Shown: positions 9,591 through 51,600, counted from the first letter of the stretch. The stretch is 64,000 nucleotides of DNA from Prasinococcaceae sp. CCMP 1430 (GCA_013416795.1 RQSC01000525.1:2812-66811); one strand, 5' to 3'. Notes: generated by a model from the sequence alone, not told the origin. Program-made: numbers and translations.

Positions 9591-11419
9591 CGGATCCAAA
9601 ACCGGCCCTTCCCGGCGGCCGAGGACGTCGCGACGCGGCGACAGCGGCGCTGGCGGCGCTCGGCGGCCTTAAGGCACTCTCGCCGGGCGCCGACGCCGAG
9701 CACGCGGACGCCCTCGGGCGCCCGCCCGCAGGCCCGCACGGCGCCTGGCTCGCGGAGCCCGCCGCGCTCGCGTCGGACGGCGACACGCCCGCTAGGCTCG
9801 AGGCGCTCGCGTCGCGTGTCGGGGCACTGCGGCGGCACTTCGGGGTTGACACCACGCCGCCCAAGGCTCTTCCGGCAGTCGTGCAGTCGACGACGCGCTC
9901 GCCCACGCCGGCTGCCGAGGCGCTCGGCTCGTCGCCCTCGCTCCCGGGGGATGCGCTTCGGCTCACATTCTCGCGCTCGTCGTCGGCGTCCCCGTTGCGC
10001 GCGCGCGTACACGCGCTCGCAGGCGCGAGCGCGGGGTTTGGCTCACCGCTGGGGGTTGCTGCAAGGCCCGCCAGTGCCCCGATGGCCGCGGTCGCGACGG
10101 GGCTTGGGACCACGGGGGATGATGCCGGCGCACACGGCCTCGTAAGTCCGTCGGTGGCAGCGGCACGCGAGGCGCTCGCCGCTGCCGACGAAGCGGCGGC
10201 AGTCGACGCCGCCCGTGCGGCGGCGAGGGCGAGGCTTGCGGCGGAGGCGACCAAGGTAAGTGGCGAGTGCTTTGCGCCCGCACGCGCTCCTTCCGCACGG
10301 GCGCACGCACCCGAGCACGCGTGAGCGCGCGCCGGGCTTCATCGACTCATCTCCGCGAAAGTGGTGCTGACCCGCTGCGCTCGTCCTCTGCTCTTTTTTC
10401 CCTTACCGTCCTCCACATTTCTCTTGCGCGCGCCCCGACGTGCGCGACGATAGAGCGCTGTGCTCGTCGCCGCGGCAAGAGCGCCCGCGCGCGAGCGATT
10501 ACACACCGCAGCTGCCGGCGGGCGCGCGCGCGCGCGCTCGGCCGGCCCACCGCACGTGCGCGAGACCGCAGCGAGCCGGGCGCGCGCGCGCGCAGTGTCT
10601 GCACCCCGCCGTCTCGATGCCGTCGAGCGGCGGATGGCGCGCTCAAAGCGTGCGCTGGCCGGACACCGCGCGCGTGACGGCGGTCCCACTCTCGCAGAGA
10701 GGACAGTTCGGCCACAGGAGGTGCGACGTGCTCTCCCCTTCGTGTGCCTGCGGCCGCCGCTTGCGTGCACGGCTGACGACCTCGACGCACGCTGTGTCAC
10801 GGCCACGCGCGCGCGCACGCGCGCTCAGACCGAGTCCAAGCCTGTTCTCGCAAGCGTGAGCACATCGCATGCCACTCGCTCGCCGACGCCTTCCCTGCCG
10901 GTGCCGTCCCGCTCGCGAGCGGCATCGGCTCCCCTCAGCCGTACGCCGCCGCTCCGCGCGCGCGCGCCGTCGCTGTCGCCGCCGGCGGGCGCGGGCTCGC
11001 CGTCGAGCACGCTGCTCACGCAGCTCCGAGCGCTCGCGCGCACCGCGCGGAAGGCGCGCCGCTCGAGCGAGGCTGGCGACTGGGAAGAAGCCGCGGCTGC
11101 TGCTGCGCTGGCCGTGAGTGCAACCGGTGGTAGGTCGGCGTCGGGCGCGGCGTGTGGCGATGAGCCCACGGCGATGGCGGCGCGGCTGGTCGGGGAAGTG
11201 AACGAGCGCATGGCCGCGGCGGCGGTGCGGCTGCACGCCCCGTTCAGCGCGAGCGGCGTGGCACGCCACCTGGGGGTGGGTGCCGGCGGCGTTGGCGTCC
11301 GCGAGCTGGGCGCCTCCGCACGGGACGTCACAGCGCCAGGCGCGCACGCGCGCGAAGGCGCCCTGGACGGGCGCGAACGCGCGCCGGGCGCGGCTGAGTC
11401 AAGACGCGCCAGCGTCTAG
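9347..11419 (+). CDS. Hypothetical Ala-rich low-complexity protein with polyQ (exons about 9347-10255 and 10829-11419)
   Basis: MPSSAPTAADVG... with a CAG-encoded Q13 tract; donor AAG|GTAAGT at 10255/6 and acceptor CTCAG|ACC at 10828/9 are in frame; no domain recognised. Confidence 0.5.
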
Positions 11420-11677
11420 CTAGTATTTCAGGAGTAGGACGGATGAGTGGAGCCTGTCGGGCACTGTCGCAGCGCGCGCGGCGGACTGCGCGCTCGCTGC
11501 GTGTTCGGATCGCCTGCATTTGTGCGTAGGCTGGGCGTGGGCGAGCCTCTTGTACGCGCGCGCGAGACACAAAAATGGATGATACAATCGGCAGAGCCGC
11601 GCGAGCGTGCGTCGGCGCAGGAGGCCGCGCGCGCCCGCGCGCGCGAGAGTGAGGTGGCCGCCCCCCGGCCTCGCCGC

Positions 11678-12586
11678 TCAGATGACCTTGGCCTCGTTCT
11701 TGAGCTTGTCGACGAGGTCGTCGACGCTCTCGACCATCACGCCACCCGCGCGCTTGGGCGGCTCCGACACGCGCACGGTCTCGAGCTGCGCCGCCATCTC
11801 CACGCCGAGGTCGGCGGGCGAGAGCGCCTCGATCTTCTTCTTCTTCGCCTTCATGATGGCCGGCAGCTTGGCGTAGCGCGGCTCGTTGAGCCGCAGGTCG
11901 GCCGTGACCACTGCGGGCAGCTTGAGCGCGACGGTCTCCATTCCCGCGTCCACCTCGCGCACGATGGTCGCCCTGCCACCGGCCGCGTCGATCTCGACGC
12001 TCGACGCGAAGGTCCCCTGCGGCCAACCCAGCTTGGCGCCGAGCATCTGGCCCGTCTGGTTGTGGTCGCCGTCGATCGCCTGCTTGCCCATCAGCACGAG
12101 GTCGGCGCCGTCGCGCCTGGCGAGCGCCGCGAGCGCCTCGGCGATGCCAAGCGGCTGCGGCTGCGGCGCGTCGTCGGGCACTGCGATGTGCGCCGCCCTG
12201 TCCGCGCCGAGCGCCAGCGCGTGGCGCAGCACGTCCTGGCTGCTCTTGGGCCCCACGGTGACGGCCACCACCTCGGTGGCGACCTTGGCCTCCTGCGTCG
12301 CGGGGGGCGGCGCGGCGCACGGGAAGGGCCGGGCGGGCGGGTGACGGCGGCGCTCGCGGCGTCAGCGACGGCCCCGCGGCGGCTCGATCGCGGCGGCGCG
12401 GCCCCGCACTGCCGCCCTCCGGCCCTCGCGCCGCACCTTGAGCCTGACGGCCTCCTCGAGCGCGATCTCGCAGAACGGGTTCATCGCGTGCTTGACCGAC
12501 GCCGTCTCGACGCCGCCGCCGTCGGCGCGCACGCGGATCTTCGCCGCGTAGTCGACGCAGCGCTTGACGGCGACGAGGACGCGCAT
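11678..12586 (-). CDS. ETFB: Electron transfer flavoprotein beta subunit (exons 12586-12437 and 12292-11678)
   Basis: [19 protein letters not shown]...[19 protein letters not shown]|[80 protein letters not shown]. Confidence 0.96.
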
Positions 12587-13553
12587 GGCCCTCCCCGCTG
12601 CAGCCGCCGCCGCCGCCGCGAGATGGATGGCGGGGGGGGGGGCGTTGATGCGCGCACGCCCGCGCCCCCCCGCGCGCGCTGTGGCGCAGCAGGCAGGCCA
12701 ACACCCACACAAAAATAAAAAATAAAAAAATAAAAATAAAAAATGGCCCCTGTTCGATAAACTGTACACCTACGCTTCGCGCCAAAATATGTAGGTCAAA
12801 ATGCACGTGATTCGAACGCTGGCGAAATGCAGGGGCGACGGACGGTTAGGCCGCAGCGCAGCGCGGTGCCGGCGGGGAGTGTGTGTGGGGGGGTGAGTAC
12901 CGAGGGCGGCGGGAGCGAGTGCGCGCGGCGTGGGGCGCGCGTGATGGACCGAGAGGGCGCCGCGCGGGCGTGCCAGGCGCGCGCGCGCGCGAGCGCGTGT
13001 GCCCCCGCCCCTCCCCCGCCTGCGCCCGCCTCCCCGCCTGCCCCCGCGCGCGCGCGCGCTTTTGAGCATTCACGAATGGCGGGAAAACAACGCAGGCAAC
13101 GCGCGCATTCGGCCGCCGCCATCAAACGCCATGCGAAGGGCGCGCCGCACCCGAATCGTACTCGCCCGTTGGTAATGTAGATCCGATCGTACGTACGTGA
13201 TCTGTGATGGGGCTTCGCTCTGCGTACCCCGCAGGGCACATATGTCATATGGCATATGCGCGCTAAGCTCAGGGCGGGGATGCGGATGCGCTTTGTGTGG
13301 CGCTCGTGTGAGTGTGTGTGCGCTTGTGTGGCTGGTGGGTGGGTGGGGAGGGGGTCGTCGCGCGAACACACACACGCGCGCGCACGCACGCGTACGCACG
13401 CTCTCGTACGCACGTGTGCGCACGCACGCGAGGACGCGCTTGCGCGCGCGTGCGCGCGCGCGCGGTGTGTGTGCGCACGCGCGCGCGCAAGCGAGCGCGC
13501 ACGCGCGTGCCACACGTCGCGAGCGCGTAGACGGAGGTGTGTGGGGGAGAGAG

Positions 13554-15587
13554 ATGCTGCGCCGCGCGGCGGCGCTGGCGGCGCGCGGGGTGTTGCACCC
13601 GCGCGACCGTGCGCTGTGGTCGTCCTCCTCCGCCGCCTCCGCCGCGGACTTCCCGGGCCTCCCCGCGGGGCCGCCCGCCGGCTTCACGAGCGAGCTGTCG
13701 CTGTCGGCGCCGGCCGCGCCGCTGCCCGTGTACCGCGCACTCGACGACGCCGGCGGCGTGGTCGCCGGGGGAGCGCCGCTGTCGGAGCGCCTCGACGAGG
13801 CCGAGGCGGTGCGTGCGCGCACACGCGCGCGCCCAAGACCACACCTTACGCACACGCGCACACACACGCGCATGCACACACATCTGACATGCACACTCTC
13901 ACACACGCGCACAGGTTCGCATGTACGGATGCATGGTGACCCTGCAGGCGATGGACGCGGTGTTCTACGAGGCGCAGCGGCAGGGGCGCTTCAGCTTCTA
14001 CATGACGGCCACGGGAGAGGAGGCGGTACGCACACGCACGCGCGCGCGCAATCACTTGCGCTCGAACGCACACACACACACACACACACATCTGACGCGT
14101 GCGCGCGCGCTCACACACACGCGTGACTCGCACACACACACAGAGCAACATTGGCAGCGCCGCCGCGCTGCGCGACGAGGACGTTGTTTTCGCGCAGTAC
14201 CGTGAGGCGGGCGTTCTGCTGTGGCGCGGGTGGTGCGCCAGGCGCTTCGCGGACCAGCTCGTGGGCAACATCGACGACCTCGGCAAGGGGAGGCAGGTGC
14301 GTGCGCGCGCGCGCGCGCGTGTGCATGTGGCAAATGCGTGTATGTGTGGGTATGTTTGCGTGCGCTCGTGCAAGTGCGGGCGCGCTCGAGATGCGCTCCC
14401 CTGACAACGAGGTTCGCCGCGTCCGCCATGCCACGCCACGCGCACGCCCCGCAGATGCCCGTGCACTACGGCGACGCCTCGCGCAACTTCCACACCATCT
14501 CCTCCCCCCTCGCCACGCAGCTGCCTCAAGCTGTGGGTGCCGCGTACGGCCTCAAACTCTCCGGCGCGGACGATGCCGTCGCCGTGGCGTACTTCGGCGA
14601 TGGCGCCGCGTCGGAGGGAGACTTCCATGCCGCGCTCAACTTTGCGGCGACGCTCGACGCGCCAGTGCTCTTCGTGTGCCGCAACAATGGATACGCCATC
14701 AGGTGGGTGTGCTTGTGCATGTGTGTGCATGTGCGGGTGTCTGTGTATGTGCGCGCGCGCAAGCGCTCCTTGCGGCGCCTTGTGGATCATCTACTCACAC
14801 ACGGATATTTGCACACACGTGCACACACACGCGCACGCATGCCATCAGCACGCCCGCCGCCGAGCAGTTCCGTGGCGACGGCATCGCCGGGCGCGCGGGG
14901 GCGTACGGCCTGCGGGCGCTGCGCGTCGACGGCAACGACGCGCTCGCCGTGCGCGAGGCCGTCGCGCACGCAAGGGAGGCCGCGCTGAAGGTGCGTAGGC
15001 GAATACACCGTATGTGTGTGTGCGTGTGTGTGTGCCTGCACGCGCCACTTTCGGCGTCCGCCATCGAGCGGAACATCTGCTTACACGTGTGCGTGTGCGC
15101 ACGCACGCACATACGCGCACGCACACGCACTCAAGGACTCCGCGGCGGTGGTCGTCGAGTGCATGACGTACCGCTCGGGCCACCACTCCACATCGGACGA
15201 CTCGAGCCGCTACCGCGCCGCTGACGAGATCAGCCACTGGCGGACCGCACGCGACCCCGTGGAGCGCTTCAAGCAGGTGAGGGCGACCCTGCGTGTGGGT
15301 GTGTTCGTGTGTGTGTGTGTGTGATATAGCGTGGTCCTGACCCCCGCGCCCAGGCGCTCACCGCCGAGGGCTGGTGGGACGACGCCCGCGAACAAGCCGC
15401 GCGCGCGTCCGCCCGGCGCGACGTGGTGGCCGCCCTCGACGCCGCCGAGGCCGCGCCCAAGCCGCCTCTCGCCGAGATGTTCCGCGACGTCTACGCCGAG
15501 CAGCCGCCACACCTCGCCGAGCAGGAGGATGAGGTGAGAGAGTTCGTGCGACGGTTCCCCAGCCACTACGCGCAAGGGGGGCGCTGA
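13554..15587 (+). CDS. BCKDHA: Branched-chain 2-oxoacid dehydrogenase E1 alpha subunit, mitochondrial (7 exons)
   Basis: Presequence-like [12 protein letters not shown]; [30 protein letters not shown]|[52 protein letters not shown]|[26 protein letters not shown]. Confidence 0.96.
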
Positions 15588-36507: not shown

Positions 36508-38530
36508 TTAGATGCGCAGCGCCTCCTCGTACGCCTCGAGCGCCTCGGCGTAGCGGCCCTGGCGTTGGTACACGTTGCCAATGTTGTTGAGCGTCGCCGC
36601 CACGTCCGGGTGGTCGTCGCCCAGCGCGGCGCGCGTGATGCGCAGTGCCTTCTCGTGCGCCTGGAGCGCCTCGGCGTAGCGACCCTGGTTCATGTACACG
36701 ATGCCAATGTTGTCGAGCGTCGTCGCCACGCCCGGGTGGTCTTCGCCCAGCGCGGCGCGCTGGATGCGCAGCGTCTCATCGTACGCCTCGAGAGCCTCGG
36801 CGGAGCGACCCTGGTCGTAGTACACGTTGCCAATGTTGTTGCGCATCGTCGCCACGTCCGGGTGGTCGTCGCCGAGCTTCGCGCGCTGGATGCGCAGCGC
36901 CTCCTCGTACGCCTCGAGTGCCTCGGCGTAGCGGCCCTGGTCGTAGTACACGCTGCCAATGTTGTTGTGCGTCGTCGCCACGTACGGGTGGTCGTCGCCC
37001 AGCGCGGCGCGGTTGATGCGCAGATCTTCCTCGTACGCCTTGAGCGCCTCGGCGTAGCGACCCTGGCTGAGGTACACGACGCCCATGTTGTTGAGCGTCT
37101 GCGCCACATCCGGATGGTCGTCGCCATGCTTCGCGCGTTGGATGCGCAGCGCCTCATCGTACGCCTCGAGCGCCTCGCCGTATCGACCCTGGTTCTGATA
37201 CACGGCGCCAATGTTGTTGCGCGTCGTCGCCACGTCCGGGTGGTCGTCGCCCAGCTTGGCGCGTTGGATGCGCAGCGCCTCCTGGTACGCCTCGAGCGCC
37301 TCGGCGTAGCGACCCTGGCTGTAGTGCACGACGCCCATGCTGTTGAGCGTCTTCGCCACATCCGGGTGGTCGTCGCCAAGCTTGGCGCGCCTGATGCGCA
37401 GCGCCTCCTCGTACGCCTTGAGCGCCTCGGGGTAGCGACCCTGACTTCGGTACACGCTGCCAATGTTGTTGCGCGTCGTCGCCACGTCCGGGTGGTCGTC
37501 GCCGAGCTTCGCGCGCTTGATGCGCAGCGCCTCCTCGAACGCCTCGAGCGCCTCGGGGTAGCTACCCTGGTTCTGATACACGGCGCCAATGTTGTTGCGC
37601 GTCGTCGCCACGTCCGGGTGCCATGTTGTTGCGCGTTGTCGCCAGGTCCGGGTGGTCGTCGCCAAGCGCGGCGCGCATGATTGGCAGCGCCTGCTCGTAC
37701 ACCTCCAGCGCCTCGCCGTAGCGACCCTGGCTCCGATACACTTCGCCAATGTTGTTGCGCGTCTTCGCCACATCCGGGTGGTCGTCGCCAAGCTTGGCGC
37801 GCCTGATGCGCAGCGCCTTCTCGTACGCCTCGAGCGCCTCGGCGTAGCGACCCTGGCTGGCGTACACAATACCGATGTTGTTGCGCGCCGCCGCCACACT
37901 CGGATGATCGTCGCCCAGCGCGGCGCGCGTGATGCGCAGCGCCTCCTCGTACGCCTCGAGCGCTTTGGTGTGGCGACCCTGGCTATCGTAAACGGCGCCA
38001 ATGTTGTTGCGCATCGCCGCGACATCCGGGTGGTCGTTGCCGAGGTTAGTGCGTTGGATGCGCAGCGCCTCCTCGTACGACTCGAGCGCCTCGGCGTAGC
38101 GACCCTGGAGTACGTACACGAGGCCCAAGTTGTTGCGCACCGCCGCCACACTCGGATGATCGTCGCTCAGCGCGGCGCGCGTGATGCGCAGCGCCTCCTC
38201 GTACGCATCGAGCGCCTCAGCGTAGCGACCCTGCTCCTTGTACACGGTGCCGATATTGTTGCGCATGGCCGCAATATGTCGGTGATCGTTGCCGAGCTTC
38301 GCGCGCTGGATGCGCAGCGCCTCCGCGTACGCCTCGAGCGCCTCGGAGTAGCGGCCCTGGCTCTCGTACACGGTGCCAATGTTGTTGTGCGTCTGCGCCA
38401 CATCCGGGTGGTCGTCGCCGAGCTTCGCGCGCTGGATGCGCAGCGCATCCTCGTACGCCTCGAGCGCCTCGTCGTAGCGACCCTGCTCCGCGGCTGTGCT
38501 CGCCATCTCGAGCTTTTTGATCTCGGCCAT
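36508..38530 (-). pseudogene. TPR-only array (about 16 x 42-aa kinesin-light-chain/TPR_12-type repeats), frameshifted at 37620/37621 and ending mid-repeat
   Basis: Consensus LGDDHPDVAxTxNNIGxVYxxQGRYAEALEAYEEALRIxRAK; 34-nt partial-repeat duplication at 37621-37654 shifts the frame; terminates ...EEALRI*. Confidence 0.8.
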
Positions 38531-39189
38531 GGCCTCGCACCACACCGTCGGAGCCGCCCCCTCTTGTGCCCACCCGCTCGCTCGCTGCGAGCGCCGCAGG
38601 GAGCGCGCCGCCTTGGACAGTGGGACCCACCGACGGTCTCGCGTTGGGCGGGCGAGCGCTCCCACGCACACCCCCTTCCCTCCCTCTTCCCCCCCGACCC
38701 TGCGCCGTGCGCGTGTGGCGCCCCCGCGCTGCTGCCCGCACGCAACGCACCGACACGCCACTGTCAGTCTGTCATTGTCGGGGCTGCGAACCTTCGATGC
38801 TACGTTCAATTTGATACGCGCTTCCCTCACATCACATCACATCGCAGCAAATCGATTGTACTGCAGTCCGAACGATGGGATTTGACCTCAGCGGCGCGAA
38901 GGAGCGGAACATTTTTTTTGCACGCGGCATTGGCATTGGATTCGCACGTCAAAACGAAAGCGCGTGAGAATCGGCATTGGAATTGGACTTTGGGAGCGCC
39001 TCCGATCAATGCGCTGTGACGCGGGTGTGTTTTAGGCTGTGCGCGCGCGTGCGTGAGAGATTTGAAATTGAATCCAATGCGTTTTGACGCGGGTATTTGA
39101 GCGGCGCGGGAGTGGACTGGCTGGCGCCTGGCGCCGCGGCGGTGCTGGTGTCGAAATGCTTACCAGCTAAAATGTGTCTACTAGCTCGA

Positions 39190-42100
39190 CTACCGAGTGA
39201 CTCCACACACATAAAAACAACGTAGTATCGGCACAACAAAGAGTCGTTTCCAAAGCGTTTTTGCATTTCGGATGTTGTTGCGCGTTGTAACTGTCTCCGG
39301 GTGGTCGTCCCCCAGCGCGGCGCGCTCGATGCGCAGGCACTCCTCGTACGCCTCGAGTGCCTCGGCGTAGCGACCCTGGTTCTCGTATACGGCGCCCATG
39401 TTGTTGAGGATCTGCGCCACATCCGGATGGTCGTCGCCCAGCGCGGCGCGGTATATGCGCAGCGCCTCCTCGTACGCATCGAGCGCCTCGGCGTAGCGAC
39501 CCTGGCTGTAGTGCACCATCCCGATGTTGCTGCGCGTAATCGCCAAATCCGGGTGGTCTTCGCCCAGCGCAACGCGCTTGATGCGCAGCGCCTCCACGTA
39601 CGCCTCAAGCGCTTGGGCGTAGCGACCCTGGCTGTAGTGCACGGCGCCGATGTTGTTGCGCGTCCCCGCCACATCCGGGTGGTCGTCGCCCAGCTTGGCG
39701 CGCCTGATGCGCTGCGCCTCCTCGAACGCTTCGAGCGCCTCGGCGTAGCGACCCTGGTTCTGGTACACGGCACCCATGTTGTTGAGCGTCTTCGCCACGT
39801 CCGGGTGGTCGTCGCCCAGCGCGGCGCGCGTGATGCGCAGCGCCTCCTCGAAAGCCTCGAGCGCCTCGGCGTAGCGACCCTGGCTTGCGTACACGTTGCC
39901 CATGTTGTTGCGCGTTGTTGCCACATCCGAGTGGTCGTCGCCCAGCTTAGCACGCCTGATGCGCAGCGCCTCCTCGTACGCCTCAAGCGCCTTGGCGTAG
40001 CGACCCTGGTCCTTGTACACGTTGCCCATGTTGTTGCGCGTCCAAGCCACATGCGGGTGGTCGTCGCCCAGTGCGGCGCGCCTGATGCGCAGCACCTCCT
40101 CGTACGCCTCGAGCGCCTCGGCGTAGCGACCCTGGCTGTAGTGCACGTCGCCAATGCCGATTAGCGACAGCGCAACGCTCGGGTGGTCGTCGCCCAGCGC
40201 GGCGCGCTTGATGCGCAGCGCCTCCTCGTACGCCTCGAGCGCCTCGGCGTAGCGGCCCTGGTGTCGGTACGCGATGCCCATGTTGTTTCGCGTCGCCGCC
40301 ACATCCGGGTGGTCGTCGCCCAGCTTGGCGCGCTTGATGCGCAGCGCCTCCTCGAACGCCTCGAGCGCCTCGGCGTAGCGACCCTGGCGGCGGTACACGT
40401 TGCCCATGTTGTTGCGCGTTCCCGCGACATCCAGGTGGTCGTCGCCCAGCGCGGCGCGGTAGATGCGCAGATCCTCCTCGTACGCCTCGAGCGCCTGCCC
40501 ATATTTGCCAAACACTGTGTCCAACACCATCGCAGCAGTGTGCAAGAGTCTGCCATGATCTACTGCGTCGGCCACGCCGCCCTCCCTCGCCCACGCGCGT
40601 AGCGCCTCTGCATGTGGCACCAACGCCCGCGCACGTGCCCACGTCGACACGTCCTCCTCTTTGTACAATTTCATCTCGGCAGACACAGCGGCCAGCGCGC
40701 CCTGAGCCGAGCGCCCCTCGCGCGCGGCGGCCTGCAATAGACGGTGCATCGAGTAGGTTGCCTCCATCTGTCCCGATGCGCCCAGCGGAATTCGAGGGCC
40801 GAGCTGTAGCAGGTTCAGGTCGCACAGCAGGCCGATGTCCTCGTCGCTGCAGCCGCCCCCGCCGGCGCGCAAAAGTAGGCTCTCAGGGATGCCCCTCGGA
40901 TCAACAAACGCCGCAACGTCCAGCATCTTGGCTGATTGCTTGTATTCCGTCGACTCTCGAACGAAGCGCAGAGGCGCCGCGAGCGCCGCGGACACCTTCT
41001 CATCCGCCTGCTCGATCCCCTCGGCGACGTTTTGCAGCGAGAGTCCCTTCCTCTGGATGACGCGTCTGTCACTCACAAACTTTCGTGTCACGCTGAGCGC
41101 GAGCGCGTGGCCCTTAAGCTCTTCGTGGATATGTAATGCTGCTGCCCGGTCATCCTCGCTCGCATCGTCATCACCAAGCAGCAGGGCGACGCCGGCTGGC
41201 CTACTCAGCGGGCCCACGGCCACGTGGTTGATGTGGCCGATGTCGTCCACCTGGCCCTTCAGCGTGTCGCTGCGCGACGTGAGCAAAATGCGCACGTTGG
41301 TTGCGCCTCTCAACGACGAGAAAAATCGAGGACGCAACCACGCGGCACCACCTACATCCGGCACGTTGTCGAAGACGATGAGGCTTACACTTTTGCGCTT
41401 GATGACGGCCTCCAGCAGCCTGTCCGCAAGCTGCTGCGCCGTGAGCTTACGTTTGCCGATTCTGCTTGGCGACAGATCGCTGAGCGCCGCGAGCGCCTCA
41501 GTGTAGCTGTTTACGAGCTTTGTCTCCTCAGTTTTGTGTTTCTCATCCGTCGCGGCGTCTAGCACCAACACAACGCGATCATCGCGGGGCTTGTTGTCGG
41601 CGGTGAAGGCAAAGCGGTACGCATATCGGTACGCCAGCTGCGACTTGCCCGCGCCAGCGATGCCCGTGAGCGATGCTATTGTGCCAGGCGAGGCAAGCAT
41701 CTCGAGCAGCTTTTGTATTTCCACTTCGCGTCCGATGAGCGCCGGTAAACCGGCCGGTAGACCAAAGTGGAAGAACGTGGTGTTGCTCACAACCAAGCCA
41801 TCCAATTGTACTAGGGCTCTGTCCATGCCAAGGTGTACTTCGACGAGCAAACGTGCATTGATCTCATCCTTGAAGGTGTCCATGTCCTCCTTGGTGCTGT
41901 TTAGTTCCTCTGAGTACCGCGTAGCGCGCACAATTCGGCGCACCGTGCCGCAGTAACCCAAGCACTCGAGCCCACAGCACCAGTCGTCTGCGGCAATCTT
42001 ATCCACCAGCTCCACGCCGCCGTCCACGCGCCTGGCGAAGGCGAGCAGCAGGTCCTTGTTTTCCTTGCGCGCCAATCTGTCTAGCTGCATCCGCGTGGCG

Positions 42101-42835
42101 TCTTCGCCTCCATGGTCCAGGCGCTCCTTCACCTGGCGCAGCGTCGCAGCCGCTGTCTTAACTGCCTTCGCGAAGCGCACGCACTCCTTTACCATAGCGT
42201 GCATCCGCTTGATGGCCTCAGCGAAGCGAAGCAGGCCCTGGCAGTGGCGGTTATAGTAGCGGGTAATGTCGGCGAAAGTCAGCACGCACGCTCCCTCGCG
42301 CAACATGACGGTCGTGTGGCGATACAAAAAGTACAATAGTGAGGTACATTGGCCAGCAAGCTAGCGCCTGCGAGCATGCGGTCGATCTGCCTTCTGCTCG
42401 CTCGGCAACTTTCTGCACGAGTAAAGAAGGTTGTGTGAGTGCTGTGCGGCCAATATCTCCGTTTTGCTTTGCCGTCAAATGACACTCGACACGCGGCGCA
42501 ATTTGTTCGAGGGACTCGGACACCGCACGCACCATCGCTACAGGCCCCAGCCACGGCGCCTGTGCGGCCATTTCCGCCACAACCTCGCTGACACCAAGCA
42601 GGTCCTTGATCACCTCCACGCCCTCGTCGCCGATGATGTTCGTGACTACCTCCACGTCAGCCGCGACATCATCGAATCGTGTCTTGAACTCGGCGACGTT
42701 CTTCGCTACCCACTGCTCCCCGTCCAGCGCTTGCACGCGCCGCTCAGCGCTCTTGGCGCGCTCAGTGGTGGTCGGCTGCCCGTCACGCCTTTCTTTCGCT
42801 GGCGACTCTGACGCATCCGATTCCTGCCCAGACAT
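39190..42835 (-). CDS. NLR-like STAND protein: putative MLKL/HeLo-like helical N-terminus + NB-ARC-type NTPase + about 10 TPRs (exons 42835-42533 and 42237-39190)
   Basis: Walker A GIAGAGKSQLA, Walker B LIVFDNV, RNBS-B-like RILLTSR, GLPL-like GHALALSV, MHD-like YSMHRLLQ, then 126-bp TPR repeats; in-frame phase-0 intron ATG|GTGCGT...GCCAG|GGC. Confidence 0.88.
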
Positions 42836-43580
42836 GGCACAGGCAAACAGGGGTAGGCACCCAGCCGGCTCAGCGGCACGCGCGCGCAGCAGGGCGGCTG
42901 CAAGGGCCGCACTCAATGCAGCGGCGCGTGCCCGCACTGACGCTGCGAGCGCAACGACAAACAGGCGCGCGTCGCCTGCGCGGCTGCGCTCCGCGTGCGT
43001 GCGCGCATGCGCGGCCCAGACTGGGTGAACAGGCGGTGCACACGTCGAGGGGACCGCCCCCGCAGGTGACGCTCCCCACCCCAACACGCCGAGCGCCTGC
43101 GGGTCGGAGGTGCACCCTGTGACACACCCTAGGTCCCTCGCCAGCCCCTCTGCACCCCCCACCCCCCGCCCGCACAACGGTCCCAGCCCGACAGACGCTG
43201 ACGCGATCATGTCCCAAGAAAAAACACGCCCTCGAATTCCATCTAAATCCGCACGTTGACCCTATTTCCAACCACGACCGTGTGCTCACATCGCTGCATT
43301 CACGGAGAACGAAATGGGCGCAGAACCACACACACACACACACAATCATTGCAAGCAGAACACATTGTAACACAATCACAATCACATGGATCATTTACAT
43401 TCACATTCAAATTTCAAAGGCAGCATCTCCATCAACGGAAGGAATTTGTATCAAATCCCACTCAAGGCGTCAATGCTTGAAGGAGCTCAACCTTTGAACC
43501 GACTGAGCTCAGATTGACGTCGTCTGTCTCTTGATGGGGAAGCTGAAGCGGAAGCCTGAGGAGCTCTCCGCACAGTTCAT

Positions 43581-43672
43581 CAAATGGCGCTCAAACTCAA
43601 AGAGCTCGGTTCGCAGTACCAAATGGCACTCTAAGGCCCAGCTCATACAGTAGCGCTATCAAATGGCACTCA
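43581..43672 (+). repeat. Three copies of CAAATGGC(A/G)CTC at 39-40 bp spacing
   Basis: Copies start at 43581, 43620 and 43660. Confidence 0.6.
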
Positions 43673-44104
43673 AAGCATCGATCTTTGGGTTTTGATCGAG
43701 GTTCCTTCGAACGGTGGGAGACTGGGAGTTGTCATACTCAGCGGCACGCGCGGGAATATTGTGTGCGCAGCAGCAGCAGCCGGCGCCACAGCGTGCGCGG
43801 CGACCGTGGCGGCGCCGCGCCGCTCCCACCCCTCGGTCGCCGCCGCGTCGGGTCCCAGGCGGCCGTGCGGGCGCGCGGGAGCCGTGGGAGGGGAGGGTGG
43901 GGGCTGAAGGGGGCGAGCGCGCGGCGCGCCGCGCGTCCGCGGCGGTACGGAGTTTTTTTCCGCGCGCAGCGGGAGAGAAAAAAACGCGGGCGGTCCTGCG
44001 GTCAGCGCCGAGTGCGGGCGCGCGGGCGGCACTCGTGGGCGCTGAGAGACACAGACAGAGCCGCCTTCGCGATTAAGCGGGCAGTTCAAGAGGGGACTCT
44101 GGCC

Positions 44105-46519
44105 ATGGCGTCTCCGGCGGCTTCGGGCGCGCCGCCCGTCCTTGGCCTGGCGGCGCTGCCGCGGCGGCCGCGCGCGCGGACCGCGCGCGCGCTGCCGGTT
44201 CTCGCGGACGGCGGCGGCGGGGGTCCCGCCTTGCCGAGGCCGGGCGCGCACGAGGTGCGCACGGTGGTCGGACCCGGGATCTCGGTGTGGACGGCCGCCT
44301 CGGAGATGGAGCACAGGATCGCCGAGGGCCGCTTCGCCACGGACTGGCGCGCGTCCAAGACGCTCGACAGGACCTCGGTGACGGTGCCCATGGGCGGGAC
44401 GCTCGCGGCGCTCGCGCGCGAGGCGGAGCTCAACCCCGAGGAGATCGCCGCCTCGGGGCTCAACCCGCGGCTCGCAGCGGACCCCAGGAGGCGCCTGCTG
44501 GCGGGAGAGACCATCCACCTGCCGCCGGGGTGCCACCTTCCGGAGGAGATCGTGCACGAAATCGAGGAGGGCGACACCATCGTGGTGCCCAGCGGGAGCA
44601 ACCTGTACCGCCTGTCGCGCAGCCTCGGGACCTCCACGAGCGCCTTCGCCGAAGCCAACAAGGACCTGCTGCTCGCGCGCAGCCCGCGCGGTGCCGACTA
44701 CGTGCTCGCGGGCGAGACGCTGCGCGTGCCGCCCGAGGCAATGCCTGCCCTGCGCGCGCAGGCGAAGGCCACGCACGCCGTCCAGGGAGGGACCTTGGGC
44801 ATACACCTCGGCGGCTCCGCGCCCAACGCGGCGCTCGCGGGCGGGTTGCTCGTGTGCGTCGCCGCCGCTGGGGTCGCGCTCGGCGTCAAGAGCGGCCACG
44901 TTGTTGTCCCCTCCTTGCGCATGCCGCGTCTCGTGGGCGAAGACGCAGCAAAGGATGGCCCACATAGGCTGGCACCGCTGCTGGCGTTCGTGGCGAGCGC
45001 CCGCGTGGCGACGGGCTCGGCGCTCGCGGCGGCAGCCGCCGTCGCGAGGGACAAGATGGTAGCGGCGCGGGACGCCATCCAGGCGCAGCAGCAGCCATCG
45101 TCAGACGGTGCCGGTAGCGACACGGCTGCGACGCACACACAGCCACCTTCACCTGCGCACACAGGGGACTCCACAGACGCCGCGGGCGCAAAGGCGCTGT
45201 CGCAGCCCTCGATGCAAGAAGAGGAGGACGACGCCATGGACGACGCCACGACGCCTGCGCCCTTTGCCAGCGCGGACCACTCGACGCCTGCTCCCTCGCC
45301 TGCCGACGCGGCCGAGTCGAGCAACGATGCGGGAAAGGGAGCGAGCGATACTGGCAGCAACGGCGCCGCGCCGATGAGCGCCGACTTGAACGGCACGGGC
45401 GTCCACTCGGATGTGCTGTCACCGCTGGGTGACGCATGGGGGCGCATCAAGGGGCTCGGGCGGCACGCAGAGGAAAACATCGCCAAGCCGATGGCAGAGT
45501 CGTACTGGGCCGAGGAGGCGCCGGTGCCAGCAAAAGATCAGAGCAAGGAGGAAAGCTCGAACGGAACAGCCGGAGCTACGAAATCCGACGGAGCCCCGGC
45601 CGTAGCGACGGAGGGCGCAGAAGCAGCGGTCAACATGTTTGAGGCGGCAGAGATGGAATACGACAGCCAGTCGAAGGAGACAGCCGGAGAGGAGAAGAAG
45701 GCGAGCGCTGCTGGCGAGCACCACGCTTTTGGCGGTGCAGCAGATGCCAACAATGAAGAAGCCGGGCGAGACGCTTCCAATGGTGTCGAGGCCGGCGCGT
45801 CCGAAGACGACGACGACGAGGACGATCACGATGCGGACGGCGACGGCCCACCCTCGCACGGCGATGGTCGGGAGAGCAGTCGCGTGGACGCATCGGTTGA
45901 CGTCGATGGCCCACACACGGGTGGCGCGAACGGGACGGATCTGGCCGTGGTGCCGCCTCACGAGCGTGAGCACGCACTCGCGAGGGTTGCGGCTGCTGTG
46001 ACCACCATGGTCGCCTCCGAGAAGCCGTCCACGACAGTGATCCGTGCCACCCCTGGCGAATCAGTGGTGTCTATCGCCGCCGATCCGAAGCTACCTCGCT
46101 GGGCGGAGGAGCGCGCTCGCGCGTTCGAGGGTACCACGGACACGCTGCTCAGCAACACGACACAGAGCGCCGTCGCTACACCCGAGGCCGAGAGCCCCAC
46201 CACGCACATCTCCTTTGTTGCCGGCGAGACGCCGACCAGCGTCGCCTCCGTCACCGCCGCGGACGCAAAGACGAGCGGCGTGATTGTTGCCATCGACGAG
46301 GAGAGGCTCACATTCACCATGACAGTACTGCGCAAGGACTACGAGTTTCTGCGCGATTGGTGGCCCAAGAGCGTCGTGCGTGTAGTCACCCGGCCGGTGG
46401 TTGCGCCGGTGCTGGCGATCCTCACGGGCGCCTATGCGATCACGAGCCTCATCGTGGACGCCTTCTTCAGGCACAGCAAGTTCAAGCAACGGTGGGAAGC
46501 GGGTTCACTGCTCAAGTAG
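44105..46519 (+). CDS. LysM-repeat protein with transit-peptide-like N-terminus, central hydrophobic segment and long acidic linker
   Basis: LysM-like units VTVPMGGTLAALARE..LNP..LLAGETIHLP and IVVPSGSNLYRLSRSLGTS..ANKDL..YVLAGETLRVP; TM-like LAGGLLVCVAAAGVALGV; hydrophobic C-terminal VVAPVLAILTGAYAITSLIV. Confidence 0.65.
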   Translation: MASPAASGAPPVLGLAALPRRPRARTARALPVLADGGGGGPALPRPGAHEVRTVVGPGISVWTAASEMEHRIAEGRFATDWRASKTLDRTSVTVPMGGTLAALAREAELNPEEIAASGLNPRLAADPRRRLLAGETIHLPPGCHLPEEIVHEIEEGDTIVVPSGSNLYRLSRSLGTSTSAFAEANKDLLLARSPRGADYVLAGETLRVPPEAMPALRAQAKATHAVQGGTLGIHLGGSAPNAALAGGLLVCVAAAGVALGVKSGHVVVPSLRMPRLVGEDAAKDGPHRLAPLLAFVASARVATGSALAAAAAVARDKMVAARDAIQAQQQPSSDGAGSDTAATHTQPPSPAHTGDSTDAAGAKALSQPSMQEEEDDAMDDATTPAPFASADHSTPAPSPADAAESSNDAGKGASDTGSNGAAPMSADLNGTGVHSDVLSPLGDAWGRIKGLGRHAEENIAKPMAESYWAEEAPVPAKDQSKEESSNGTAGATKSDGAPAVATEGAEAAVNMFEAAEMEYDSQSKETAGEEKKASAAGEHHAFGGAADANNEEAGRDASNGVEAGASEDDDDEDDHDADGDGPPSHGDGRESSRVDASVDVDGPHTGGANGTDLAVVPPHEREHALARVAAAVTTMVASEKPSTTVIRATPGESVVSIAADPKLPRWAEERARAFEGTTDTLLSNTTQSAVATPEAESPTTHISFVAGETPTSVASVTAADAKTSGVIVAIDEERLTFTMTVLRKDYEFLRDWWPKSVVRVVTRPVVAPVLAILTGAYAITSLIVDAFFRHSKFKQRWEAGSLLK

Positions 46520-46833
46520 TGCACCCCCCTTCAGACAATCGAAGGCGGGCACGGCAGCGGGAGTGCGCGCGCGCTCTCGGCAAGTATACATAGCCAAGCG
46601 AAAGGGCGCGCAGCAGCTGCTGGCGGCGCAGTAGGCATTAGATGCAATGCGCGTCGTTTCTTACAGCAACGTGACCGCACAGAAGAGCACACCGCCGGGG
46701 CCACGCGCGGAAGAAGCCAGCGCGCGCGCTCGCCGCATGAGAGAGGGGCCCTGCGACGAGCGTCGAGAAAGAATGTGCCCGCTTTGGGGTAGGGCGGGAG
46801 GTGGTAGGTGGTAGGGCGGCGACGGCCTGCGCT

Positions 46834-49322
46834 CTACGCCCAGGGCTGCCTTTCGCCGCCGACAACCACGGCGCGCGGGAGGGCGCGCCTCTGTCGCCCG
46901 TGCATCTGTTGCCGCGCGCTCGGCACGACGCTCGCGCGCTCCATCCTGTGCGCGGCCGAGCCTGGCGGCATCGCGCCGACGCGCTTGTTGCGGCCCATCC
47001 GTCCGTACGACGCGCCGAACTGGTCTTCCGGCGGGCTGAAGTCGCAGTACTCCAGAGCGGCCATCTTGGCCATCTTGGACTCGCCGACGCCCGCGACGTT
47101 GCTCCACGCGGCGTGCTGGTGCGCGTGTCTGTGGGCGCGCTGTACAGCGCCTCCTTTCTCGCGTACCTGTTGCTCTCCGCCGTGCTCCGCGACGGGCGCG
47201 AGCCCCCGCCACCGGCCTGCGTCCCCGTAGCGAATTTCGCCCTCGTTGGATCTGCCGACGCCCACGGCCTTGCTCCATGCGGCGCGCTGGTGCGCGTGCT
47301 TGTCGACGGGCCTGCTGCCACCGCCTTGCGCGCGCACAGGCTGTCGGCTGCCGTGCTCGGCGACGGGCGGAAGCCGCTGCCACCGGGCAGCGTCGCCGTA
47401 GCGAATCTCGCCCTCGTTGCGGTGGCGCGCATCGTGCTCGCGGGCGCCAATGCGCGCGCGCAGCCGTTCCCGCCAGCGATCCGCAGCCGCTTCCACGCGC
47501 GGGAGCAACTGTCCGCCGCCACCGCGCCACGCGGGCCGCGCTGGGCCGTCGCTCAGCGCATCGGACGCCACGCTCGCCGCGCGCGAGTTGGCGCGCGAGA
47601 ACTCGCGCCCGCGCAGGAATTCGCTCGGCTTTCGGCCCGCTGCGCCGTTGGCGCCGTTTGCCAGGTTTGGCTTCTGCTGCGCCCAGCGCGCCCGCAACGC
47701 CACCAGTCTCTGCGCCGCTAGGACCGCGGGATCAGCCCTGGCGTGCGCGGCAGGCCGAGCGCGCGGATCGCAGCGCACCTCGATCGCGCCAGCAGCGCCT
47801 CGCAGGGCTGGCAGTCGCACGCCGCCGCGCTCGCGCGCGGGCGAGCCCCCCTCTGAGCGCGCGCCGCTCGGTTTGCTTTGGCGCTTGCCCCGGTCATGCC
47901 CGTGCTTGCGACCTCCACTGTCTGCGCCATCCAGGCTGCTCATGGGCAGGGCGCTCTCCGATGCCGCCACGCTGCCGCCCGCGGTCGAATCGGCGTCGCA
48001 TTCGCTCGCGGCGTCCGTCGGATACCTGCTCGCGGGCAGGCGCTTGGAGAGAAGCCGCAGATTCCGGGGCACCTTGATGGTGCTGCACATGCCCTTGCTG
48101 TTGAGCGGGTGGTTGGCATTGCTCTGCGCGTGCGACACGGCGCTGATGCAGCTGCGCGGCGTCGCGGGCTCCTCCGCCTCCCTCGCGCCGGGCAGCAGGT
48201 GCGCGCGCCTGCGACGGGGGAGATCGCGACGGCGGGAGTCATGGGGTCGTGGGCGTCCGCGGCGCACGCCCGCGCGTCAGGACCTTTCAGGGGATGCGTG
48301 GCGCACGGATACCGTCACGGTGACACGACATCCCCACAGCGGACAGCGCGCTTCTATTGCGCGCACGCACCTCCTGATGCAGCTCATGCGCAGCACATCG
48401 GCGACCGTCGGCCTCGTCGATGGCTCCGGGTCGAGCAACGCGCGGATGACGCGGCTGAGGTCCGAGCTGTAGCTGCTGGAAATGGGCGCGTAGCTCGCGC
48501 GCATCACCTTCTGGCGCAGCTCGGGCAGCGAGCGGGCCTCGAAGGGCACGCCAAAGGTGCACATCTCGTACAGGCACACGCCCAGCGCCCACGCGTCCGA
48601 GCTGAAGGAGTACGGGCGGTTCTTCCACACTTCGGGCGGCATGTAGTGCGGCGTCCCGATCTGCGTGGTCGCGAGGCGCCCCTTGAGCAGGCGCGCGACG
48701 CCCAGGTCGCCGAGCTTGACGACCTCGGCCGTCTTTCTCATCACGTTTGCGAGTTTCACATCGCGGTGCAGCACCTTCGCCTTGTGCAGGTGCTGCACGG
48801 CCATGGCCATCTGCATGAAGTATGACCAGATGGTGTTTTCGGCGAGCGGACGGGCCTGCTGCTTGCGCCGGCGCACGTAGCGGCTGAGGTCGCCGCACGG
48901 GCAGTATTCCATCACGATGCACAGCTTGTTGTTGTCCACGAAGCTCTCGTAGTACTCGCATATGTGCTCGTGCGCGACGCCCGCGAGCAGGCGGACCTGC
49001 GTCGGCGCGGAGCCGCGCGCGCGCGGCGCAGTCAGCGCCCGCGCGCGGAATCGATCGGACGCGGTCGTCGTGGCGCGGCTGCGCTGCGCGCCGCTCGCAC
49101 TGCGCCGGCGCGCCGACCCACCTCATTGACGGCCTCGATGCGCTCCGCCTGCGACATGTGCCTGACGTTGGTTTCCTTGAGCGCGTACGTGGCGCCATCG
49201 CTCTTCCGGCGGACCTTGTACACCGCGCCGTAGGAGCCCTTGCCCAGGAATCGCTGGACCTCGAAGTGCTGGTGCATCTCGCGCTGCCCGCCCGCCTGCG
49301 GGTGCGCCTCGCGGTGCGCCAT
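46834..49322 (-). CDS. NIMA-related (NEK) Ser/Thr kinase, CNK2/FA2-like
   Basis: FEVQRFLGKGSYGAVYKV..YALKE..AVNE|VRLLA, HRDVKLAN, KLGDLGVARL, TQIGTPHYMPPEVWKNRPY; post-kinase TIKVPRNL..LPASRY motif; minus-strand TGTAA at 46665-46661. Confidence 0.88.
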
Positions 49323-50103
49323 CGCCGCGGCCGCGCGGCGCGCTCGAGCGCGCCGCCCGCTCCCTTGACCGCCCGACGCGCAGGCGGCCGCACACCCCCG
49401 CCCCGCGAACCGCCTCCCGCGGGCGATCGACCAGTCGATCGCCGCGAACACTCCCCCGCGCACGCGCCGCCCGCGGGCGCGCGCGCTCTGTGGCCTCCGC
49501 CACTGCCACTGCCACCCACACCCACCCACCGCCCAATCCCTCCCGCACGCCCAGCTAGGAACGTCCCCACTCCCCCCCCAACCCAACACACCCAACACAC
49601 CCACACACACACACACACCACACCCGCAGCCGCGCGACGAGCGTCGCGCACCGCGCGCACACACACGCGGTCACACGCGCTCTCTCGCGCGCTCGGGGAA
49701 CCGCCGCACATACGTTCGAATGCGTTTCGGCACCGACGACACCCAACGGGCGAACGGCTCTTTTTTTTTGTGCAGTCGTTTTTTTTATTTGACTTCGAAA
49801 TTCTTTTTATTTTAAATGATTTCTTTTTATTTTTTAAATTCTTTTTTTGGGAGGTGGAGGTTTAGGTGGTGTGTGTGTGTGGGGGGGGGGGGAAGCTGGG
49901 GTGGGGTCGAGCTGGCGGAGGGCGCGGCGGGGCCTCGAGCAGAGCACTGAGCGCTGTGAGCGGCGGGCGGGGAGAGAGCTGGCGTCGCTCGCGTGGCGGG
50001 GCGCAACGGCCGGCGGCGGGCTCGCGGGCTCGGTGTGGCAGCCCGTCGATTACAATGGCTGACCGCGGCGGCGCGCGCGCGCGTGCGTGGTCGCGCGCGC
50101 GCC

Positions 50104-51600
50104 CTACTCCGTGGGGAAGGAGAGGTCGAAGGGCCGATGCACCACCGGCGCCTTGGGCGGCCTCTCCGCGCCATCACCCCCGCCCGCGCCGTCGCCGGCC
50201 TTGCGCTTGCGCTCGCCCGCGCGCGAGGGCGCCGCGGCGATGGCGCCCTGCAGTCGGCGCAGCGCCGCGGCGTCGAGCGCGTCCACGTCGAGCCAGTTGT
50301 CGGAGCCGATCGGGAGCTGCGCGCGCGCGAAAGAGGCGCGGGGTCGGGCGGGTCGAGGAGCATGCGCGCGCGCGCGCACATGTGACGCGGAGCGCGCGGA
50401 CGGCACTGGTGCGTGAGCCCGAGCCCGCGAAAGCAATCGAAAGGAGGCGCATGCATGCGCGCGCACAAAAGCGCACACGAACGCGCCATGACGCACCTTG
50501 CTCCCTGGCCCTTGGTGCTCCGCCGCGATTGAGTAGAGCGCGGCGACGGTGTCCTCCCCCCCCGGCACGAGCGCCTGCAGCGCCGCCTTGAGCTCCGCGC
50601 GCTCCTCCTTGCTCGGCCGCGCGCCCGCGGCGAAGCGCGCCTCCGAGCGGATGCCCGCCAGCGCGCGGTCCACGGCGGTGAGCGTGCGTGCCAGCGCGGC
50701 GTAGCGCCGCTCCGCCGCGGCGGCCTCGCCTCTGTCCTTCGCCAGCGCCGCCGCGAGCTCCTCCGCCTCCTCCTCCGCGCGCACGCGCGCGCGCTCCTCG
50801 GCGAGCTTGGGCTCCACGAGCGCCTCCCAGCGCTCCTCCAGCCGCTCCGCCATCGTGCCGGCCATCACCCACACGTCCGAGCGCGGCGCGTTGTACGCGC
50901 GCGCGTTCTCAAACACCAGCCGCATGTCTGACAGCACCTGCGCGGGGTGCGTGTAGATGGCCTTGTCGAGGCGCGTCTTCACCGTGCCGAGGTCCATCGG
51001 CCGCGTGATCACCTTGTAGTAGTCCGCCAGCCCGAGCGTGGCGGCGTCCACAGGCTTGGCGAAGGGCCACGCCCACCGGTGCGTGAGCAGCGCGCGCACC
51101 ACGCCGAGGCACGCCTTCAGAATGTCGCCCATGCGCCTCCGCGCGTCGCCCTCGCGCTTCCTGCGGTCGTCGTCCCACGTGGGCAGCGCGGCGGACAGCG
51201 GGCACGCAGCGGCGCGCGCCGACGTCGCCGCGCGCGCGGAAGCCGCGCGGCGCTCCTCGGCCATCGCGCGGCCCACCTGCGCGCGCGCGCGTGGGCGCCC
51301 GCGCGCGACAATCCCAGTCAGCTGTGCGCGGAACGCGGCGCTCGCTGCCGAGCCTCCCCCTTCCACCTCTCTCCGACTGCTCTCTCCCTCGCGCGTGCGC
51401 GCCCAGGGACTCTGTTAGGGTTGATGCACGCACCTGGTCGGCGAGCTTGGTGAGGTCGGCGAGCTGGCTCTCGAGGTCGGCGCGCTGCGTGGCAGCGTCG
51501 ACCGCGGACAAGCTTCCCATGGCATCCAGCGCCGCCCAGCCCTCGGCGCTCGGCGCGCCCGGCGCGGGCTCGGCGCCGCCGCCCCCTCCACCCCCGCCGC
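50104..51600 (-). CDS. Bromodomain + ET-domain protein (GTE/BET family); 5' exon(s) near gap N51880
   Basis: HRWAWPFAKPVD..LGLADYYKVITRPMDLGTVKTRL..DMRLVFENARAYN; ET-like SKEERAELKAALQAL...LDVDALDAAALRRLQ; TGTAA at 50054-50050. Confidence 0.9.

Follow-up and report, generated by a model that had tools for sequence, protein, structure and literature searches.

Does a unicellular green alga possess a death or immune receptor built like the NOD-like receptors (NLRs; NOD, nucleotide-binding oligomerization domain), and what would its N-terminal part do? The question is raised by a gene on the minus strand (42835-39190) of a 64,000-nucleotide (nt) stretch of DNA from Prasinococcaceae sp. CCMP 1430 (GCA_013416795.1, RQSC01000525.1:2812-66811), hereafter the window, from whose first letter all positions are counted. 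Little is understood, in molecular terms, of regulated cell death and innate immunity in single-celled algae of the sea. The original prediction, made by a model reading the DNA, had proposed a receptor with an MLKL/HeLo-like head, an NB-ARC switch and tetratricopeptide repeats (TPRs). Our analysis establishes a tripartite NLR-like architecture for the 1,116-residue (aa) product: a head (aa 46-265), a P-loop switch and ten TPRs, in the effector–nucleotide-binding domain–repeat order that had been predicted. The favoured reading, an expressed nuclear gene for a signal transduction ATPase with numerous domains (STAND) that acts as a death or immune switch through a membrane-acting head, stands in our estimate at an even chance.

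A transcribed and spliced two-exon gene

The gene consists of a single pair of exons (42835-42533 and 42237-39190), in which a long minus-strand open reading frame (ORF; 39190..42336) is joined to an upstream exon starting at ATG 42835. Exon 1 (42533..42835; 101 codons, aa 1-101) encodes a polar leader (aa 1-45), two predicted helices and, at its end, the motif APWLGPVAM. It closes with GCG ATG/GTGCGT at 42533, the GT donor lying at 42532. A spliceosomal GT..AG intron of 295 nt in phase 0 (42238..42532) separates it from exon 2 (39190..42237; 1,015 codons plus stop, aa 102-1116), which begins at 42237 after CTGCCAG and is an uninterrupted ORF.

Assembled contigs of four public sequencing runs were mapped onto positions 38300-43300 of the window (5,001 letters). 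A 295-nt skip (42236/42532; CT..AC on the plus strand) was present in contigs of both RNA runs, X1 and X2, and a 1,433-nt RNA contig matched 41254-42236 plus 42532-42981, and hence both exons, with zero mismatches. This joint was absent from the DNA-like run X4, the depth of which is even at ~34. RNA contigs reached up to 43035 in X1 and 42981 in X2, giving a putative 5' untranslated part at 42836..43035 with an approximate start; beyond about 43140-43143, where X4 has a depth of ~34-40, RNA depth is 0. An unspliced RNA contig (42236-42561) was also found in X1 at a depth of 5.3 versus 21 for the spliced form, which indicates some intron retention or pre-mRNA.

The same junction occurs in the 100% identical eukprot protein PRCOL_00002404-RA (P0002), which ends at 636 aa, before the TPRs. 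We consider this public model to be truncated because an RNA contig is unbroken over 40358-41250, where the model ends. The identity of the protein also identifies the organism, which had been predicted only as an apparent green alga, as Prasinoderma coloniale of the phylum Prasinodermophyta. This phylum branched off before the Chlorophyta/Streptophyta split. Among related loci, the intron position is common to L001, L002, L004 and L006, always in phase 0 and directly after PVA(M/K), and the alignment of L007 crosses the intron site (with ~126 nt fewer over 42238-42532). In the exon-1 homologues P0006-P0008, the reading frame runs through the donor position seen in the window gene. These results establish that the gene is transcribed and that its transcript is spliced from 42533 to 42237, as predicted, with the same joint in two RNA runs, the public model and related loci.

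Within exon 2, mismatch-free RNA contigs cover 40358-42236 and 39229-39379. No single unique RNA contig bridges the full TPR array, because the repeats break assemblies; the 3' two-thirds of the ORF thus rests on the open frame, on the 39229-39379 contig and on orthologous ORFs, of which P0001, P0003 and P0004 have a layout equal to that of exon 2.

The STAND switch, the TPR array and their relatives

The NTPase module (aa 266-603; 40732..41745, minus strand), delimited by motifs and profile comparison, contains every STAND/NB-ARC motif quoted in the original prediction, in the expected order. Walker A is GIAGAGKS (aa 293-300; 41641-41664), Walker B is LIVFDNV (aa 387-393; 41362-41382), the sensor-1-like motif is LLTSRS (aa 419-424; 41269-41286) and the GxP-like motif is GHALAL (aa 477-482; 41095-41112). 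A DUF7779/winged-helix region (about 40873-40923) and an MHD-like YSMHRLLQ (aa 596-603; 40732-40755) complete the module. Walker A and Walker B are invariant in six family NTPase domains, and DUF7779 is matched in 6/6 family members in Pfam. The window protein itself matches ATPase_2 (5.6e-6), DUF7779 (6e-5), NB-ARC (1.5e-3) and NACHT (2e-3).

When the TPR-free part of the protein was compared with NCBIfam, NF040586 (FxSxx_TPR) scored 65.8 bits (E 2.8e-18) over the whole NTPase module, short of the curated cut-off of 300 bits, so that the protein is a relative of this family and not a member. The closest proteins outside the algal family are bacterial: an actinobacterial TIR-nSTAND5-TPR protein (P0009, 30% identity) and an XRE-NB-ARC-DUF7779-TPR protein (P0010). 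Alignment of the family with P0010 by hhalign gave 98.3% probability and E 1.9e-14 over 393 columns, spanning NB-ARC, DUF7779 and the linker to the TPRs; P0010 itself scores 42.5 bits with Pfam NB-ARC. In a search of the PDB with the family profile, Apaf-1 was the best true (non-trivial) match (E 0.005, from Walker B to GxP), with the pairs SLLVFDNV/SLLILDDV, RILLTSRS/QILLTTRD and KGHALALS/KGSPLVVS, and there were no NACHT proteins among the matches. From these comparisons, we conclude that the central domain is a STAND switch of the NB-ARC/DUF7779/TPR kind rather than a clean member of the Pfam NB-ARC family. A helical linker (aa 604-670; 40531..40731), which aligns with that of P0010, leads from the NTPase to the repeats.

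About ten TPRs had been predicted, and exactly ten tandem 42-aa units of TPR_12/TPR_10 type are present (aa 671-1090; 39271..40530; Pfam TPR_12 1.8e-168, TPR_10 2e-133), with a period of 126 nt. The units share on average 72.5% of residues and 82% of nucleotides, and their variation is clustered at unit positions 2, 4-6, 24, 27 and 34-39. Leucine-rich repeats (LRRs), the sensor of plant NLRs, are absent from the protein, whose C-terminal repeats are TPR only. After the array comes a C-terminal tail, RNAKTLWKRLFVVPILRCFYVCGVTR, with the stop (39190..39270); the RNA contig at 39229-39379 matches with zero mismatches. The tail sequence at 39193-39270 (...LFVVPILRCFYVCGVTR) is hydrophobic and of lower G+C, and the orthologue P0001 ends in ...REQQSDAGAPSTNGSNP instead. 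There are ten TPR units in the window strain versus seven in the L006 orthologue, and the C-terminal tails differ. By comparison of these sequences, the 3' gene ends are structurally different between strains.

This overall architecture is of a known kind. Fungal NLRs share the layout of effector head, STAND NTPase and TPRs, and likewise have 42-aa TPRs with high internal conservation, repeat-number polymorphism and few variable positions; in them NB-ARC is preferentially paired with 42-aa TPRs, and HeLo-like heads occur (PMC4986451). Language-model clusters of the type 'MLKL N-terminal/NB-ARC' also exist in Basidiomycota. The algal protein differs from the fungal ones in that its head has no significant HeLo, HeLo-like or MLKL_N match, the retrieved proteins nearest to its NTPase are actinobacterial, and its host is a green alga. 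The bacterial proteins P0009 (NF040586, from Micromonospora, with a TIR head) and P0010 are collinear with it through NTPase, winged helix, linker and TPR_12/TPR_10, whereas their heads are TIR or helix-turn-helix (HTH) domains, and the algal gene is interrupted by a spliceosomal intron and lies in a eukaryotic syntenic setting. The NB-ARC domains of Apaf-1 and plant NLRs present Walker A, Walker B, sensor 1 (LLTSR versus LLTTR), GxP (GHALAL versus GSPLVV) and an MHD-like His in the same order; in contrast, the algal protein carries TPRs instead of WD40 or LRR repeats and a Walker B with DN, not DD. Among algae, Klebsormidium and brown algae have been described as carrying nucleotide-binding (NB)-TPR genes, and Chromochloris as carrying NB-LRR genes (PMC7145615). 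By description, the NB-TPR genes are similar to ours in having NB followed by TPR without typical plant R-protein signatures, but Prasinodermophyta lies outside that study and no MLKL-like head was described there (PMC7145615). The CC, RPW8 and TIR heads of plant NLRs have been traced back only as far as streptophyte algae (PMC11218826). The P. coloniale genome paper makes no mention of NLR, NB-ARC or TPR genes (PMC7455551), and our literature search found no paper describing a head–NB-ARC–TPR architecture in Prasinodermophyta.

Orthologues and divergence of the locus

The related loci are orthologues from a range of Prasinoderma-like algae, and those on L006, L007, L008/L001 and L004 are syntenic with the window gene. 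The TARA Oceans scaffold L006 is collinear with window positions 50231..39707 and also bears kinase and bromodomain genes. Three further groups of TARA Oceans scaffolds are L007, with 89% nt identity to the gene, L001 and L008, with 75-77% nt identity to exon 2, and L004, which has the upstream intergenic DNA in common with the window. The Logan contigs L002 and L003 come from a much more distant alga, in which a head 36% identical to ours is followed by two tandem NTPase modules; on L002 (SRR22824304, 3665-6817) the same head precedes two complete NTPase–winged-helix modules before the TPRs. In L004 (820-1122) two stop codons interrupt the frame of the exon 1 leader (...TARA*AA*KRAQ...); translation may begin at a start codon further on, an additional intron may be present, or the copy may be decaying.

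Comparison with L006 revealed a divergence hot spot in an otherwise highly similar block. The flanking genes show 96-98% nt identity, with synonymous divergence (dS) of 0.05-0.06 and nonsynonymous divergence (dN) of 0.004-0.018; the NLR-like gene shows 83-92% nt identity, dS of 0.12-0.19 and dN of 0.05-0.11, the latter 4-10 times that of its neighbours. Overall, the few pairwise comparisons made with metagenomic scaffolds put the rate of divergence of the locus at 3-10 times that of its syntenic flanks, and synonymous divergence from L006 is raised about threefold over 39700-43500. Inside this hot spot lies an island of 96% identity to L006 (40500-40999). Across the orthologues as a whole, the NTPase has a dN/dS of 0.24-0.30 and the head one of 0.24-0.55; these values signify purifying selection, so that both domains are functional. 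The linker (aa 604-670) is the least constrained part, with a dN/dS of 0.94 versus L006. Fast divergence together with a variable TPR number is reminiscent of immune and allorecognition receptors.

The head domain, competing readings and neighbouring genes

The modest novelty of the protein lies, at the sequence level, in its head. The head peptides quoted in the original prediction are all present. The motifs are APWLGPVAM (aa 93-101), GLLRFAEAIK (aa 102-111), MVKECVRFAKAV (aa 116-127) and RRIVRATRYSEELN (aa 201-214). Residues 1-45 are polar and charged, and residues 46-265 are predicted, with low confidence, to be helical and amphipathic. The part encoded by exon 2 (aa 102-265; 41746..42237) is predicted to be all-helical and includes GLLRFAEAIKRMHAMVKECVRFAKAV as well as RRIVRATRYSEELN. 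Between the head helices lies a Cys-rich loop, DDWCCGLECLGYCG (aa 185-198; 41947..41988), the W and several C/G residues of which are kept across orthologues.

Searches for relatives of the head outside the family were negative throughout. In an exhaustive phmmer search of 1.84 billion cluster representatives, aa 1-275 matched only five proteins, which were without exception pieces of one Prasinoderma-like gene family. The distant L002 head, used as query in a word-indexed search, gave nothing at E<=10, a scan of JGI metagenomes with the head alignment yielded 303 pattern matches of which 0 were confirmed, PADLOC gave no head match, and no further copy of the head turned up in the window by tblastn. 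The head is thus a predicted all-helical domain that is lineage-restricted and novel in sequence.

Given its architecture and evolutionary behaviour, a role of the protein in immunity or cell death is a reasonable inference. Based on characterised STAND and NLR proteins, we propose a plausible sequence of events. The variable TPR surface would bind a non-self or danger ligand. Ligand binding would free the ADP-locked NTPase for nucleotide exchange and oligomerisation, and oligomerisation would gather the N-terminal helical domains as the output. The most likely output, at about even odds, would be the action of a divergent MLKL_N/RPW8/HeLo-like bundle on membranes, leading to ion flux or to the infected cell's death.

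The resemblance to such bundles, which the original prediction had drawn from a helical pattern, is supported by leads of two kinds. In a language-model comparison, an MLKL_N cluster (0.86, 192 shared features) ranked first among the named neighbours of aa 46-262, with MCAfunc, SesA, Goodbye and RPW8 clusters behind it, and with the 36% identical L002 head 10/10 of the best named neighbours were MLKL_N, DUF7792, RPW8 or MCAfunc (0.91, 177 features). By the calibration of the tool these values are at 'lead' level, the recognition value of 2262 lies just under the mark of 2300, and the queries, being homologues of each other, are not independent. TNFAIP8, Goodbye and DUF7708 clusters were likewise among the neighbours of the head. 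The motif W.LG.VA...K.C..(F/L)A..V is reminiscent of the helix 1-2 region of MLKL/MCA/RPW8-type domains. From residue 93 onwards, the head resembles the MLKL four-helix bundle and the HeLo, HELL, RPW8, CC-R, MCAfunc and DUF7792 domains in its size (~170 aa), in its predicted helical and amphipathic character and in its place upstream of a switch. In contrast to them, the algal head has a conserved 92-aa extension and a Cys-rich loop (WCCGLECLGYCG).

Together with the lead-level standing and mutual dependence of the two language-model queries, a series of results weighs against a membrane-acting head on an NB-ARC receptor. No match was found at E<=10 between nine head fragments and the Pfam families MLKL_N, HeLo, SesA, RPW8, Goodbye and MCAfunc, nor did the PDB give a head match either by phmmer or by profile. 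The head contains no transmembrane-like or hydrophobic segment (highest KD19 value, 1.12). The fold comparison that had been suggested for the head was carried out with AlphaFold2 on aa 1-300 and aa 44-268, the inputs including every available orthologue fragment. The mean predicted local distance difference test (pLDDT) values were 40.4 and 45.3, the models being unusable and consisting of long helices only, and the family is too small to allow a deeper multiple sequence alignment. Foldseek against the PDB with the pLDDT-45 model returned nothing below E 0.2 and generic long-helix proteins only, which speaks neither for nor against a four-helix bundle. The polar leader and two predicted helices precede the candidate first helix (PWLGPVAMGLL...), the start of which is at aa 93. 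MLKL, HeLo, RPW8 and CC domains begin at the protein N-terminus and are not known to have such an extension. For the switch, the window protein scores 18.3 bits with Pfam NB-ARC (PF00931), under the gathering threshold of 23.5 bits, and 18.3-19.0 bits with NACHT (PF05729), under 26.7 bits; the orthologue P0004 falls just short for NB-ARC at 23.1 bits, and the second NTPase of L002 exceeds the two thresholds, with 36.6 bits for NACHT and 24.6 bits for NB-ARC. The predicted label 'NB-ARC' therefore holds as homology to P0010 and Apaf-1 but not as Pfam membership. Finally, the faster divergence of the locus is drawn from a small number of scaffold pairs. In sum, an MLKL/HeLo-like head is plausible, though neither proven nor disproven: the language-model neighbourhoods and the motif point towards it, and the lack of Pfam and PDB matches and the start at aa 93 point away. 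If the protein is an NLR-type receptor, we consider the chances of an MLKL_N/RPW8/HeLo-like head to be about evenly balanced; that Prasinodermophyta thereby possess a very divergent MLKL_N/HeLo/RPW8 superfamily domain joined to an NB-ARC-TPR switch is a more tentative claim, which we hold to be possible but less likely than not.

Other explanations of the locus have to be set beside this one. The protein may be an NLR-like receptor whose head is a lineage-specific coiled coil or adaptor that recruits or activates a partner, comparable to CARD, PYD and the fungal prion-forming adaptors, or that only oligomerises. We regard this as possible but clearly less likely than a membrane-acting head. 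The confinement of head relatives to Prasinoderma-like algae among the 1.84 billion representatives, the missing Pfam and PDB matches, the long-helix AlphaFold models with their generic Foldseek neighbours, the conserved extension of 92 aa before the putative first helix, the lack of a hydrophobic stretch, and the TNFAIP8, Goodbye and DUF7708 clusters among the language-model neighbours are all consistent with an adaptor. However, two divergent family members agree in having language-model neighbours of the MLKL_N/RPW8/MCAfunc clan and not of adaptor folds, and no candidate partner gene was seen next to the locus, the downstream neighbour being TPR-only.

An unlikely alternative, to which we give about one chance in five, is a non-immune STAND regulator or scaffold of the MalT/AfsR type or similar to NPHP3/KLC, in which fast evolution would reflect relaxed constraint and repeat instability. 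The nearest outside relatives are indeed bacterial proteins of unknown role (the FxSxx-COOH TPR protein and the XRE-HTH NB-ARC-TPR protein, which resembles a transcription regulator), Pfam gives weak TPR_NPHP3 and NPHP3_N matches, PADLOC finds no defence family besides TPR matches, and the algal NB-TPR proteins described previously have no assigned function (PMC7145615). Yet relaxed constraint alone does not explain a divergence hot spot within a 96-98% identical block or the raised synonymous divergence, and the head and NTPase are under purifying selection across deep divergence. The changes in repeat number and the position-restricted TPR variation mirror fungal NLRs (PMC4986451), and the nearest bacterial relative bears a TIR domain, which is typical of immune effectors. 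That the gene is artefactual, dead or derived from contaminating bacteria is highly improbable. The actinobacterial character of the best non-family NTPase matches, the public model that stops at 636 aa and the two in-frame stops in the exon 1 leader of L004 might suggest one, but a GT..AG spliceosomal intron is removed in RNA, the G+C of the gene matches that of the surrounding DNA, the block is collinear with an independent metagenomic scaffold bearing eukaryotic kinase and bromodomain genes, and the 1,116-codon frame is intact with dN/dS well below 1. Contamination and pseudogene status were accordingly rejected on RNA splicing, synteny and dN/dS.

The locus provides the third green-plant phylum with a receptor of the NB-ARC-type/TPR build that is expressed, conserved and evolving unusually fast. 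Its head has no detectable sequence relatives elsewhere, and TARA Oceans metagenomes supply a natural series of alleles. Should the head be MLKL/RPW8-like, the origin of executioner–NLR fusions in the green lineage would become open to direct testing. A death switch of the NB-ARC resistosome type with an executioner bundle would then have existed, or arisen independently, in unicellular green algae with a TPR instead of an LRR sensor. It would probably serve antiviral abortive infection and form a link between fungal HeLo-like and plant RPW8/CC-type NLRs. If the head is not MLKL/RPW8-like, it would represent a new NLR output domain.

Two odd joints were present among the mapped contigs. One contig of a DNA run skips 2,284 nt (40867->43152), its shorter side comprising only 21 letters. 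The other, a contig found in RNA and DNA runs, goes from 40039 back to 38407 with 16 extra letters and probably stems from a TPR paralogue elsewhere. The NLR-like gene is followed immediately downstream by a TPR-only gene on the minus strand (36508-38532), with an ATG near 38532 (MAEIKKLEMAST...) and the same 126-nt units; its array is split over the overlapping frames 36508..38151 and 37562..38830. Splicing of the NLR-like gene into this array was considered and rejected: RNA depth is 0 over 38634-39134, where DNA depth is normal, and the last TPR unit ends in a capping tail, which also contradicts a continuation. Since RNA depth falls to zero over this interval, the TPR-only gene is a separate transcript, and RNA linking the two genes was not observed. 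At the corresponding place, the L006 scaffold bears two TPR-only ORFs (11359-12804 and 13222-14622).

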